From contig CP075494.1 in assembly GCA_021613535.1 (NCBI GenBank), positions 9,920,001 to 9,984,000 on the forward strand: 64,000 nt of DNA, given 5' to 3'. Made by a program: the position numbers and the translations under genes. The number at the start of each line of letters is the position of its first letter. The first letter of the stretch is position 1. Shown one piece after another: positions 1 to 14,562 of the stretch. The notes beneath the pieces are model-generated. The model was not told the DNA's origin, made no database searches, and saw only the letters and a program-made list of their open reading frames with translations. The DNA comes from Adineta vaga (Eukaryota; Animalia; Rotifera).

Positions 1-1224
1 ACAGGACCACCAGCACCACTCTTTTTTGGAATGCCACCAAGATTTTCTGGTAAAACAAATGTTGATTGGACAGTTAAATATTATATGTGTAAAACAAATC
101 AACCACATCAAATAAACATGGGTGTACCATTTTATGGTCGATATTGGAAGAATGTTCCAAGTGAACCAATAGATCCCACAGATGGTATGAGGAGAAAATA
201 TAAAGAATTATTTAATTATTTGATATTTTCTGCTTTAGGTATGTGGCATAAAGCAAATGCTGTAAATGGTAAATTTGAAGGTGGTTATGCGCCATGGAAT
301 GAAATAAAAAGTTCTTGGTTAACAAATCCAGCTTATAAACAAGAAAATCATGAAAAATCCAAATCATCTTATGCTTATAATGCTCAAGAAGGTATATTCT
401 TAGGTTTTGAATCACCTGAATCATTACGAGATAAAGCAAAATATGCTGTGGATAAAAATGTTGGTGGATTAATGATATGGGCAATTGATCAAGATGATGA
501 TGATTTAACAATGATGAATATTGTATCAACAGCTCCATTATGTCAAAATACTGATCCAAAAGCAACATTTTATAAATGTTCACCATTAAAAGATGAAAAA
601 CGTTGGTGGACATTAGAAGATAGTGAAGAAAATGCTGGTATGTGCGGTCGATCAGCACCATTATATAGAGGTTATTATCCTGTTTGTGATCCTGATGATC
701 CGGGTTATAGTTGTTGTAGTCCTGAAGGCTTTTGTGGATTTTCTGATAAACATTGTAAAAGTCCTGGTGTTAATTATGGTGAAAATCCTGATTTATTAGT
801 TCAAGAACCTGTTCGTCCAACAATCAATCCTATTCTTTGGTATACACTCGATGCACCGGATGGTAAGCGCGGTCGATGTGGACGAGATGTACCTAAACTC
901 GATAATGGTGAATATCCAATATGTAATCCTGATGATGCTAATGCTCACTGTTGTTCAAATGGTGGTTATTGTGGAGCTGGTAAAGAATTTTGTGAATGTG
1001 AAGAATGTATTGATTTCAAAAACGATCCAAAGTTTCGATTCAAACCAAAACAATGGACTGATGATGGAAAATGTGGTAAAAATGCTCCACAAGTCAATGG
1101 TCAAATGGCTATTTGTAATCCTGATTCTAAAACAGCATATTGTTGTTCATCGTCAGGTTACTGTGGTTCAGGTGCTGAATTTTGTGATTGTGAAGGATGT
1201 GTCAATTACAAGAATAAGAACTGA
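1..1224 (+). CDS. GH18 chitinase, 3' part (5' end is outside the window), with C-terminal Cys-rich chitin-binding-like repeats
   Basis: Frame is open from base 1 (TGPPAPLF). GH18 C-terminal motifs MGVPFYGRYW and GGLMIWAIDQDD. Three repeats of G-x-CG...C.PD....CCS..G.CG...C. A 54-nt in-frame intron at 185-238 (GTATGA...TTTAG) is read through by the ORF track. Confidence 0.9.
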   Translation, partial: TGPPAPLFFGMPPRFSGKTNVDWTVKYYMCKTNQPHQINMGVPFYGRYWKNVPSEPIDPTDGMRRKYKELFNYLIFSALGMWHKANAVNGKFEGGYAPWNEIKSSWLTNPAYKQENHEKSKSSYAYNAQEGIFLGFESPESLRDKAKYAVDKNVGGLMIWAIDQDDDDLTMMNIVSTAPLCQNTDPKATFYKCSPLKDEKRWWTLEDSEENAGMCGRSAPLYRGYYPVCDPDDPGYSCCSPEGFCGFSDKHCKSPGVNYGENPDLLVQEPVRPTINPILWYTLDAPDGKRGRCGRDVPKLDNGEYPICNPDDANAHCCSNGGYCGAGKEFCECEECIDFKNDPKFRFKPKQWTDDGKCGKNAPQVNGQMAICNPDSKTAYCCSSSGYCGSGAEFCDCEGCVNYKNKN

Positions 1225-2537: not shown

Positions 2538-3362
2538 TTAACTAAAAGATGTTATTACAATGATTAGTATTATTTTTGATTGTTAAACAGTTGTTTTCCT
2601 TACTCTTTATTTTTTGTATAAATATACAAGTTACACAATTTCCTAGACATAAGTGAAATAACATGATGAATAATGTTTTTATCGTCATTCGTATCTAAAG
2701 TAATGCCTATCAAAATACGAAATTATCTTTTGTAATGATCGTATCCTACAAGAAAACCAACAAAAACTACAACGATTTCTTTGTATTGAGTAATATTATG
2801 TAGAATTTGAAGATATTTGTCTGTATGACCAGTGACAATGTGACTAATAAATAGATCAAAAATCAGATCTACACCCACACCCTCAAGATCATGCAGACGG
2901 TTGGAAACACCCGTCTGCCGGATTAGTTCTACCAACTAAACCACATCTTTTCAAATAGATAATTTCTTGTGCAGCAAACAACAATAAGCATCGTCATATG
3001 TGTCTTTCCGTGACGAACAGCCGTAGAACAATACTGTTGTTAACTGGTCGAAATATATTATGGTCATCTCGACTCCTCTTATTCTCTGTCACAGTGAAAT
3101 CATGAATGAAACTTTTTTCCACACTCGATTATTGATAGATTCGTATCAATCGTATAGGAGGATAGTAATGTTTATTGAACGAATAGTTTGAATTGCCTTA
3201 TACCACTAAATTTAAGACATGAAGATGAACTAATTTAGGGATATCGTATCCGCTGATATTATACTTCAAAATGTACAATTGATTTCGAACGTGTAACTCT
3301 TTTTTCTCACATATAATAATGTTGTTATTATGCACGGTATATAAAGTTCTCTTTGATTAATG

Positions 3363-3472
3363 AAAAGTGGTTGCTCTGGCAGATCAGTGTTGCCACCGAT
3401 CCGCACGATTTCGTCATCGCAACATGTATTTAATCCGTTAGGATATTTACCTCTTGGTAAGTTGTAATAAGC
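3363..3472 (-). ncRNA. Spliced-leader RNA gene, pair 1 left
   Basis: Reverse complement reads GCTTATTACAACTTACCAAGAG (3472-3451) | GTAAAT. This matches the bdelloid SL exon as I recall it (GGCTTATTACAACTTACCAAGAG). The donor sits in a UUACC-AAGA-GGUAA stem-loop. The 3' end is approximate. Confidence 0.9.
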
Positions 3473-3606
3473 AACTAGTTTGAGGGATGTGTAAAGCACG
3501 ATTCTTTTTCTGTCTCTACACATACGACTTTCGGGAGAACGGAAGGAAAAGTAAGATGTGTCGAGACAGCGTAGATGGCGTGCTCTAGAGACCATCGAAA
3601 CAAATT
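3473..3606. promoter_or_regulatory. Bidirectional SL RNA promoter, pair 1 (134 bp)
   Basis: Motif A (ATRTGTMRAGAC) at 3512-3523(-) and 3556-3567(+). Motif B (YGTRCT) at 3495-3500(-) and 3579-3584(+). Offsets are -51..-40 and -28..-23 for both genes. Confidence 0.75.
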
Positions 3607-3716
3607 GCTTATTACAACTTACCAAGAGGTAAATATCCTAACGGATTAAATACATGTTGCGATGACGAAATCGTGCGGATCGGTGGTAACACTGATCTGC
3701 CAGAGCAACAACTTTT
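3607..3716 (+). ncRNA. Spliced-leader RNA gene, pair 1 right
   Basis: SL exon at 3607-3628 and GT donor at 3629. The 110-nt unit differs from the consensus only by GCAA to GTAA in a tetraloop. Confidence 0.9.
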
Positions 3717-3984
3717 CATTAATCAAAGAGAACTTTATATACCGTGCATAATGACGTTACTAAATGTCAGAGAAAATATTCACGGATAAGTAAGTATAGC
3801 GAAAAAAGAAGAGCATTAATTATGCACTAATACAAATATAACAACAAGAAATTCATGAAAATATTACTCTCGGAGATTGATATTGTCTTTAATCTACATA
3901 GCTATTCGTAATCGCAACATAAATGGGGTTTGGTTGTCAAATGCTTCATCTGTTGATTGTCCCTCTTCATTTTCTGCTTCGCAT

Positions 3985-4008
3985 TGCTCTATCAGAGCAA
4001 CAACTTTT
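3985..4008 (+). repeat. Orphan fragment of the SL RNA gene 3' end
   Basis: CAGAGCAACAACTTTT (3993-4008) is identical to the last 16 nt of the SL unit. It is preceded by TTGCTCT, the reverse complement of its AGAGCAA segment. Confidence 0.55.
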
Positions 4009-4193
4009 ATCCATTAATATAGAAAGGTAACTGACTGTGTAGTACAAAATGAGATACGAAAATAATCACTAACATCAAACGTTCTATAACAGTGTTGCAG
4101 ACTGATGTCGAAAGCTTGCTTTCAAATCGGAATAATTGCCACAAGAAAACTCACATTCTTAAGAATTTTATCTTTTATTTCATTTATTGAAAG

Positions 4194-4303
4194 AAAAGTT
4201 GTTGCTCTGGCAGATCAGTGTTGCCACCGATCCGCACGATTTCGTCATCGCAACATGTATTTAATCCGTTAGGATATTTACCTCTTGGTAAGTTGTAATA
4301 AGC
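4194..4303 (-). ncRNA. Spliced-leader RNA gene, pair 2 left
   Basis: SL exon at 4303-4282 followed by GTAAAT; consensus copy. Confidence 0.9.
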
Positions 4304-4436
4304 AACTTGTCTTCACAGTGTGTGGAGCACAAACGTTTCATTGTCTCTACATATATGGTTTTGGAAGTCGTAAAGAAAAAATGAGATGTGTAGAGACAGC
4401 GTAGATGGCGTACTCTAGAGGCCATCGAAACAAATT
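4304..4436. promoter_or_regulatory. Bidirectional SL RNA promoter, pair 2 (133 bp)
   Basis: Motif A at 4343-4354(-) and 4386-4397(+). Motif B at 4326-4331(-) and 4409-4414(+). Same offsets as pair 1. Confidence 0.75.
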
Positions 4437-4545
4437 GCTTATTACAACTTACCAAGAGGTAAATATCCTAACGGATTAAATACATGTTGCGATGACGAAA
4501 TCGTGCGGATCGGTGGCAACACTGATCTGCCAGAGCAACACTTTT
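4437..4545 (+). ncRNA. Spliced-leader RNA gene, pair 2 right
   Basis: SL exon at 4437-4458 followed by GTAAAT. One-nt deletion near the 3' end (GCAACACTTTT). Confidence 0.9.
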
Positions 4546-5704
4546 ATAATTAAACATGAAAAAAAATTCAATCTGTAAAGGCTTCTTAACATTTGTTACG
4601 AGTTCTCAATAAAGCTGAGTGAATGTTAATGTGAACAAAAAGTGTCGACATAAATTTGGTTGAGAGTATGGAAAAACGCATTTCATCGCAGAACATGCAT
4701 TGGTTCATAAACGGTTTTTTCGAGTTTGAAGTAGTTGTGGATTTCATTTCCCGAAGCTTAAGTATGTCGCAACTGGTACACTTTTCTTGAGATCTTTATG
4801 GGTGTAATTAGCATTGTGACAAACAGAATCAGCGTTTAAAATATTAACATCAAACAACTGATAGGATACTAGTCTCAGTGCAGCTTTTTCTGAAACGAAC
4901 GAAAATGAATGGAAAAATTCGATGATTGTGCTCAGGTCGGAGTCGTCGTATTGGATGATTACGGTCTAGTCTAATTCCTCGAATATAATACGAGAACACG
5001 TTCTTGTGTGAAGTGGCTTCATATACTGTTGAGTGGTTGAAAGATGGATAAAATATTACCTATGGAACAATAAACTGTCCATATATTAGAAACTACTTAA
5101 TCATTACTACTGCCGAGAATCAATATATGAGATTGAGATCATACATTCGAAAGCTATGACTTTATTGTAATTCTTGAGGGTGTCTATCGAATGAAACTCA
5201 CGACTTTTTGGATATTATTTGCAAATTATCTTAGAGAAATACGAACCCGCTTCACCTACATGGATCCCATTTTTGGATGTTTCTTTTGTTTGCTCTGTGA
5301 GCTGTTCCAATTACTGTTTTTGATGCTTCAAGCGATAGAACACAAGGCAAGTATCGTTATGAATTTACTAAATCAAGGTGGAATACGATGTATTTTGAAG
5401 AAAACGTAAGACTCCCTCACTCGATCCCCCCATTGTTCTTGGCTACTTCGAAGCATTTATCATGTGATAATGATATATCCGCCAAGCAATGTTGCTTTGT
5501 TAAGGGAAAGTAATAAAATTGACATCTATTTAGATGAAAACTAAGAGAATAGTTGCATGGTGGTAGAATATTATAATGAGCGATTTTATTGAATCAACAA
5601 AACAAAACAAAGTATATTCATCCATTATATATTTTCTCCTATCACAACTGGTAGTATCGATACAATGATTGTACTTAGATTATCTTTTTGTATTTGATTA
5701 TTAA

Positions 5705-5814
5705 AAAAGTTGTTGCTCTGGCAGATCAGTGTTGCCACCGATCCGCACGATTTCGTCATCGCAACATGTATTTAATCCGTAAGGATATTTACCTCTTGGT
5801 AAGTTGTAATAAGC
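5705..5814 (-). ncRNA. Spliced-leader RNA gene, pair 3 left
   Basis: SL exon at 5814-5793 followed by GTAAAT. Single change UAAC to UUAC in the loop of the AUCC/GGAU hairpin. Confidence 0.9.
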
Positions 5815-5947
5815 AATTTTTTACGATAGTCTCTAGAGCACGATTCTCTTGCTGTCTTTACACATATGGTTTCGGGAGAACGGAAGGAAAAGTACGATGT
5901 GTAAAGACCAGGTTGATATCGTGCTCTAGAGACCATCGAAAAAAATT
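5815..5947. promoter_or_regulatory. Bidirectional SL RNA promoter, pair 3 (133 bp)
   Basis: Motif A at 5854-5865(-) and 5897-5908(+). Motif B at 5837-5842(-) and 5920-5925(+). Same offsets as the other pairs. Confidence 0.75.
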
Positions 5948-6057
5948 GCTTATTACAACTTACCAAGAGGTAAATATCCTAACGGATTAAATACATGTTG
6001 CGATGACGAAATCGTGCGGATCGGTGGCAACACTGATCTGCCAGAGCAACAACTTTT
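5948..6057 (+). ncRNA. Spliced-leader RNA gene, pair 3 right
   Basis: SL exon at 5948-5969 followed by GTAAAT; consensus copy. Confidence 0.9.
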
Positions 6058-6262
6058 CTAATAATCAAATATTGAACGAGAAGCTATTGTTTTGGAAGAC
6101 ATTGTTGATTTGATGAGTGCAGAATGAAAAAAGAAATGTAAAGTATACTAGCTAGATAGGATTCATATTTGTTACATCGTATAATAAATTTGCTTTGTTG
6201 TGTTTTTCTTGTTTCAATAAAAACGAGACGTGCAGTATTGTGGAAAGGACGTAAAGCATATG

Positions 6263-14490: not shown

Positions 14491-14562
14491 GGCCTGATGG
14501 TCTAGTGGTATGATTCGCGCTTCGGGTGCGCGAGGTTCCGAGTTCGATCCCCGGTCAGGCCC
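14491..14562 (+). tRNA. tRNA-Pro(CGG)
   Basis: Acceptor stem GGCCTGA/TCAGGCC; A box TGGTCTAGTGG; anticodon arm CGCGC-TTCGGGT-GCGCG; B box GTTCGATCC; T5 terminator at 14564-14568. One A.C mismatch in the T stem. Confidence 0.93.

Follow-up and report, generated by a model that had tools for sequence, protein, structure and literature searches.

We have analyzed a 64-kb window of the genome of the bdelloid rotifer Adineta vaga (contig CP075494.1, positions 9,920,001 to 9,984,000) that contains three short palindromes. We conclude, with a probability of about 0.9, that the window holds six functional-looking spliced-leader (SL) RNA genes of the bdelloid type, arranged as divergent pairs. The exon, followed by GTAAAT (GCTTATTACAACTTACCAAGAG and then the donor), is present in exactly six exact copies in the window, where shuffled sequences lead one to expect 0, and these copies form three head-to-head minus/plus pairs (Table 1). 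A preliminary description, made from the letters alone, had proposed three head-to-head palindromic pairs of SL RNA genes with six near-identical arms and starts 133-134 apart, not in head-to-tail tandem and with no 5S gene nearby. Pattern and repeat searches bear this out: the orientation alternates, the inverted arms measure 116-177 nt, and the paired starts are separated by 134, 133 and 133 bases in pairs 1, 2 and 3 (134-135 bp from start to start). At the Rfam gathering threshold no 5S rRNA gene was found in the 64 kb, the sole match at this level being a tRNA gene downstream of the SL pairs, at 14491-14562(+).

The identification as SL RNA genes, also proposed in that description, is supported by the match of the exon to the published leader, by a GT donor lying in stem I, by a conserved and covarying body of about 103 nt and by an upstream element of the U2 type. 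The original account of bdelloid SL RNA is reportedly that of Pouchkina-Stantcheva and Tunnacliffe in 2005. The published rotifer leader is GGCTTATTACAACTTACCAAGAG (PMC3795323, Table 1); the original work, to the extent that it is summarised in a later paper, described a 23-nt exon and SL RNAs of about 100 nt, with more than 50% of transcripts carrying the leader, in two bdelloid families (PMC1925144). The genes in the window agree with this published RNA in a leader identical over 22 of 23 nt, in the GU donor that comes next and in a predicted RNA of about 100-105 nt, the leader being common to two bdelloid families. They differ in the first G of the 23-mer. In all six copies the match to the other 22 nt is exact and the leading G is not encoded; the preceding base is T in 58 of 58 genomic copies and, in 147 copies from the environmental contigs described below, T (139) or C (8). 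Because this base is never G in some 200 copies, the first G of the published leader is not templated, and it is probably derived from the cap. The encoded exon is thus 22 nt long, against the published 23 nt. The 103-nt gene bodies vary at just two positions among the six copies (3687 and 5781), so that four of the six encode an identical RNA.

Table 1. SL RNA genes, promoters and inverted arms in the 64-kb window, with variant and interrupted SL genes elsewhere in the genome. All six window genes are found by exon plus donor match and by covariance model R1; PSE, proximal sequence element; MFE, minimum free energy; LINE, long interspersed nuclear element.
Feature	Position	Strand	Match to GCTTATTACAACTTACCAAGAGGTAAAT	Start G	Remarks
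SL RNA gene, pair 1 left arm	3370..3472	-	3445-3472	3472	Exact exon and donor match; 22-nt exon 3451-3472, donor GT 3449-3450; model R1 123.2 bits, E 1e-25
Shared divergent promoter, pair 1, 134 bp	3473..3606	.			PSE-like boxes 3510-3523 (left gene) and 3556-3569 (right gene), both -51..-38; box ATGTGT[A/C]GAGACAG lies 37 nt upstream of each start
SL RNA gene, pair 1 right arm	3607..3709	+	3607-3634	3607	T-run 3713-3716; variant T at 3687 in loop of stem-loop III
Inverted arms, pair 1	3324-3500/3579-3755				177 nt, 93% (repeat search)
SL RNA gene, pair 2 left arm	4201..4303	-	4276-4303	4303	
Shared divergent promoter, pair 2, 133 bp	4304..4436	.			Promoter box
SL RNA gene, pair 2 right arm	4437..4539	+	4437-4464	4437	MFE fold -34.2 kcal/mol, z -5.4
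Inverted arms, pair 2	4195-4310/4430-4545				116 nt, 97% (repeat search)
SL RNA gene, pair 3 left arm	5712..5814	-	5787-5814	5814	Variant 5781 in loop of stem-loop II
Shared divergent promoter, pair 3, 133 bp	5815..5947	.			Promoter box; start-proximal 28 nt alike in both arms
SL RNA gene, pair 3 right arm	5948..6050	+	5948-5975	5948	
Inverted arms, pair 3	5676-5844/5918-6086				169 nt, 94% (repeat search)
C9A exon copies	C1:1639488, C4:2216454, C4:14065160, C4:11308415, C5:9907262, C6:1428195, C6:3847902, C6:6374888				Eight copies
SL-inserted LINE copies	C5:10915936-10921125, C5:9902066-9907262, C6:1428195-1433371				Three SL genes

RNA structure, promoter and polymerase

The structure was derived from an alignment of 129 distinct sequences, 42 from the A. 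vaga genome and 87 from environmental contigs. The consensus fold has a stem I (UUACC/GGUAA) around the donor, a variable stem-loop II, and an invariant closing helix GUUGC/GCAAC with stem-loop III. GTAAAT stands directly 3' of the exon, and stem I straddles the exon-donor junction and is invariant in all 129 sequences. Over the whole alignment 96.8% of the cells are paired, with compensatory changes at 12 pairs (258 cells); none of 500 shuffles was as good and slid controls had 24-55% of cells paired. Most of the covariation comes from the environmental sequences, whose introns differ from every genome copy (stem-loop II with GAUC...GAUC is an example). Conservation and structure extend to 103 nt from the start, and a T-run follows; runs of at least four T, 1-3 nt beyond the closing helix, are found in 40 of 58 genomic and 125 of 149 environmental copies. 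The product would be an RNA of roughly 103-105 nt, with stem I and its GU donor, stem-loop II and then the GUUGC/GCAAC helix around stem-loop III, and the downstream T-run is probably where transcription terminates or the 3' end is formed. That mRNAs receive the leader is known from published work; in this step the 22-nt exon and its cap would be passed to pre-mRNAs by trans-splicing.

The promoters of these genes are conserved as well. An upstream element, ATGTGTAGAGACA or (A)TGTGTA[G/A]AGACA, lies at -51..-38, its distance from the start being constant across 58 genomic and 138 environmental copies. Another conserved block, GATGTCGTGCTC, is found at about -32..-21. Each start G is preceded by TT, and the SL promoters contain no TATA box. 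The U2 small nuclear RNA (snRNA) genes of A. vaga carry the same element at -50..-38, also with no TATA box, while a different element, together with TATATAA near -30, precedes its U6 and U1 genes. One U1 subtype has an element, TTCATTCACCG, in common with U6, unlike SL and U2. The element common to SL and U2 genes points to a SNAPc-type snRNA promoter, probably read by RNA polymerase II. With two SL genes back to back, the spacer of about 134 bp would carry two such promoters in opposite orientation.

Several points weigh against the interpretation as working SL RNA genes. No Rfam family matches the genes, so that they lack a curated model, and a permissive threshold yielded only chance matches to microRNAs and small nucleolar RNAs. 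The run data consist solely of assembled Logan contigs of uncertain RNA or DNA origin, some of which overrun the gene ends, and they show neither transcription of either arm nor the leader on mRNA 5' ends. Two such contigs (5965-6174 and 5992-6151) extend beyond the 3' end of the SL gene and are therefore no proof of transcripts, sludge metatranscriptome contigs carry a related SL intron and continue past the gene, and the search of sequencing runs turned up no more than small fractions of the sampled words. The assignment of the environmental contigs to a taxon is itself inferred. Finally, the conserved 103 nt include no canonical Sm site (of the AAUUUUGG type), and a T-run directly after the last helix would equally suit a polymerase III terminator.

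These last two points can be combined into an alternative in which the SL genes are real but transcribed by RNA polymerase III, the T-run of four or more that begins 1-3 nt past the last helix in most copies being the terminator and La/Lsm proteins binding the U-tail, which would explain the missing Sm site. We consider this possible but distinctly less probable than polymerase II. The SL promoter has no TATA box and its element is that of U2, whereas U6 has another element with a TATA box near -30, and the 5' G of the published leader that the genes do not encode is best explained by a cap. Kinetoplastid SL genes, which polymerase II transcribes, likewise terminate at a T-run.

The RNA does have other candidate sites for Sm-type binding, namely the invariant single-stranded GAUGACGAA and the 3' ACUUUU. 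Beside the closing helix, an invariant GA faces another GA (SL RNA positions 55-56 and 97-98; window 4491-4492 and 4533-4534). Judged from the sequence, these could form tandem sheared G-A pairs and, with GAUGACGAA, a candidate protein-binding site in place of the canonical Sm site.

The divergent pair in A. vaga and its relatives

Pattern, BLAST and covariance-model searches of the six contigs of the genome (100.8 Mb) found about 85 SL-like genes. The claim that the repeating unit is a divergent gene pair proved to apply well beyond the window, since 70 of these genes belong to divergent SL-SL pairs whose starts are separated by 111-136 bp (mode 134). Three others divergently face a U2 gene at 123-132 bp, six belong to divergent pairs with widened spacers (330-437 bp), and six weak matches are orphans. 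In total there are about 40 SL loci, about 38 of them paired, and half lie within four clusters. The pairs in the window belong to a nine-pair cluster at C5:9,884,275-9,926,050; in the other clusters (C2:8.68 Mb, C5:10.91-10.93 Mb and C6:4.52-4.53 Mb) SL pairs are interleaved with U2 genes. The sole same-strand repeat is a 790-bp SL-U2 unit, present twice at C2:8684694-8686273. Two inverted block duplications are evident in the window's cluster: C5:9882850-9885879 matches 9909518-9912771 at 98-99%, and C5:9907222-9909897 matches window 3352-6069 at 88-95%. Beside pair 1 there are two weak covariance-model matches, 2828-2927(+) and 3863-3971(-), of 19 bits (E ~0.03), which may be SL copies in decay or may have arisen by chance. 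A GH18 chitinase exon with a chitin-binding domain (31-1224(+)) is located upstream of the SL pairs.

The same layout is seen outside this genome. When metagenome contigs were scanned for the exon followed by GTA, 95 contigs were found, and on these the exon pattern forms 52 divergent pairs whose starts are separated by 126-138 bp (mode 135). When genes were identified by the intron core instead, there were 180: 104 in SL-SL pairs (~130-139 bp), 11 facing U2 (mostly at ~134 bp), 36 at contig ends and 29 unpaired, so that 115 of the 144 informative genes, leaving out those at contig ends, are paired. The proteins that flank two of these loci are 60% and 68-76% identical to their best A. vaga matches, and thus the contigs come from clearly diverged relatives, which we infer to be other bdelloids. 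On one environmental contig (7996-12936), 3 kb separate SL genes from a gene that has its best A. vaga match, at 72-76% amino acid identity, 16 kb from a degenerate SL pair (region C5:10664631-10682367); the synteny of an SL locus may be conserved here. As the pair layout is found both genome-wide and in these bdelloid-like contigs, it is the normal organisation of the gene family and not a local oddity.

The two halves of a pair are less alike than the description as a palindrome implied. That term holds for the gene bodies plus a stretch of flank that varies in length, but not for the promoter halves: over the 60 nt upstream of the start the two arms agree only to ~66%, and the partner is never the closest relative (0 of 42). 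Each promoter side is instead ~94% alike to the corresponding side of another pair. With two distinct promoter sides, each nearest to the same side elsewhere, the pair is an old two-sided unit that has been copied whole. The copying would have taken place locally by inverted segmental duplication and also to other chromosomes, with the arms only occasionally homogenised by gene conversion. The two sides of the A. vaga pairs are not recognisable in the environmental pairs. Gene conversion was also considered as the general keeper of the likeness between arms and was rejected, as only a few pairs fit: the intron body is nearest to that of its own partner in 14 of 38 cases, ties included, and clear arm-to-arm conversion is seen in two dispersed pairs (C1:2551181/2551315 and C6:11319856/11319990).

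These data bear on the idea that each pair has a single active arm, the other being a silent or decaying duplicate kept by gene conversion. In its favour, one arm of a dispersed pair is often altered in its exon (C9A, G1A) or interrupted by a LINE, and partner arms in the U2-linked clusters differ in having a 24-nt exon. However, throughout the C5 cluster to which the pairs in the window belong, exon, donor, structure and promoter box are perfect in both arms, and partners are usually not nearest relatives, so that conversion is not what preserves the arms. We regard a single active arm as improbable.

Much less probable still is that the palindromes are relics resembling miniature inverted-repeat transposable elements (MITEs), or copies borne by mobile elements, that merely contain SL-like sequence. 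They do have the MITE look, with inverted arms of 116-177 nt and a short spacer, and some 12 pairs, on C1, C4 and C6, are scattered and have 0.4-1.6 kb of flank in common, in patches. The preliminary description had named hundreds of dispersed copies with target-site duplications as one finding that would speak against SL genes; there are about 40 loci and no such duplications. The palindrome ends vary among pairs, with no fixed termini, and the flank homology of dispersed copies passes beyond the arms and ends raggedly, which together with the lack of target-site duplications rules out a MITE. Moreover, exon, donor, promoter box and a structure with compensatory changes are all conserved, the two promoter sides differ and are passed on together, and in some cases the module joins SL to a bona fide U2 gene. 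Assembly artefacts are hardly conceivable, despite the precedent of large palindromes in the first A. vaga draft that proved to be scaffolding artefacts (PMC8494291), given divergent pairs of ~134 bp at no fewer than 35 loci with locus-specific differences, 52 pairs on independently assembled environmental contigs, and the presence in 2013 runs of about 45% of the words sampled from pair 1.

Leader variants and an SL-inserted retrotransposon

A second class of leader has a 24-nt exon, ACTTATTACAACTTACACCAAGAG, with a full SL-like intron and promoter box (for example on the minus strand of C5:10924177-10924282). At C5:10913063-10933647 and C6:4520296-4531315, both U2-linked clusters, it is always the partner arm of a canonical SL gene, and the variant was also seen on a contig from another organism. 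A tentative extension, which we think doubtful as a whole, is that the ~134-bp module is an ancient, bdelloid-wide bidirectional promoter unit that couples components of trans-splicing (SL/SL, SL/U2, 22-nt/24-nt leader ACUUAUUACAACUUACACCAAGAG). The second leader might then be specialised, for instance for the downstream genes of operons like nematode SL2, and the fixed spacing might come from a shared factor or a nucleosome-free platform.

Another exon variant, GCTTATTAAAACTTACCAAGAG (C9A), occurs eight times, and almost all of these copies are in dispersed pairs, on one and the same promoter side. Three SL genes are interrupted at the same site, after intron nucleotide ~40, by a non-LTR (long terminal repeat) retrotransposon of ~5.1 kb, a LINE. 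Its first open reading frame (ORF1) has a zinc knuckle, ORF2 has AP-endonuclease and reverse transcriptase domains, and a poly(A) tail follows. The insertions have a duplication of ~12 bp that is the stem-loop II sequence, and the copies are 95-99% alike. In the copy at C5:10915936-10921125, the SL sequence on the 5' side of the insert has the C2 type of intron and that on the 3' side the local type; this mixture hints that the LINE is co-transcribed from an SL promoter and carries the SL 5' end with it.

Comparison with other SL and snRNA genes

The SL1 genes of Caenorhabditis elegans are said, after Krause and Hirsh in 1987, to stand back to back with 5S rRNA genes in a unit of ~1 kb that is repeated about 100 times head to tail. 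The rotifer genes resemble these in that an SL gene is divergently transcribed from an adjoining small-RNA gene. In C. elegans, however, the partner is 5S, a polymerase III gene, in a tandem array, whereas here it is SL or U2, with no regular array and with no 5S gene of the kind found in nematode and chaetognath repeats. The SL RNA genes of trypanosomatids, Schistosoma and Ciona are multicopy and in head-to-tail arrays. Multiple copies and an upstream promoter of the snRNA type are shared with these, as is, with kinetoplastids, a downstream T-run; their orientation is uniform, whereas the rotifer genes alternate in orientation inside a fixed 134-bp module, with irregular intervals between modules or with modules dispersed. 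Divergent pairs of U snRNA genes also occur in animal genomes, and these too are small nuclear RNA genes placed back to back, each with its own proximal element. The A. vaga genome itself has a head-to-head U1-U1 pair (C6:4233946(-)/4234356(+), within C6:4233946-4234518). The spacing of the SL pairs (133-136 bp across species) is, however, far tighter and better conserved than that of the U1-U1 (249 bp) or U2-U2 (485 bp) pairs. With MITEs the SL loci share a short palindromic look; they differ in having neither target-site duplications nor fixed termini, in their low copy number and in their content of functional RNA genes.

The preliminary description knew of no account of this architecture, and the searchable literature gave none for divergent pairs, U2 linkage or the promoter element of rotifer SL genes, although this is weak evidence, most subscription journals and the original 2005 account being beyond its reach. 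Because divergent pairs of small-RNA genes are common, the layout is a modest surprise and not a new principle.

Rotifer SL trans-splicing has been known since 2005. What this analysis adds is the gene unit, a divergent pair of fixed spacing, together with a promoter element common to U2, a secondary structure backed by covariation, an encoded exon corrected to 22 nt, and the physical linkage of SL and U2 genes. Annotators gain a model by which SL loci can escape being masked as MITEs. The SL-targeting LINE parallels NeSL and SLACS/CRE elsewhere, and the second class of leader bears on whether bdelloids have operons.

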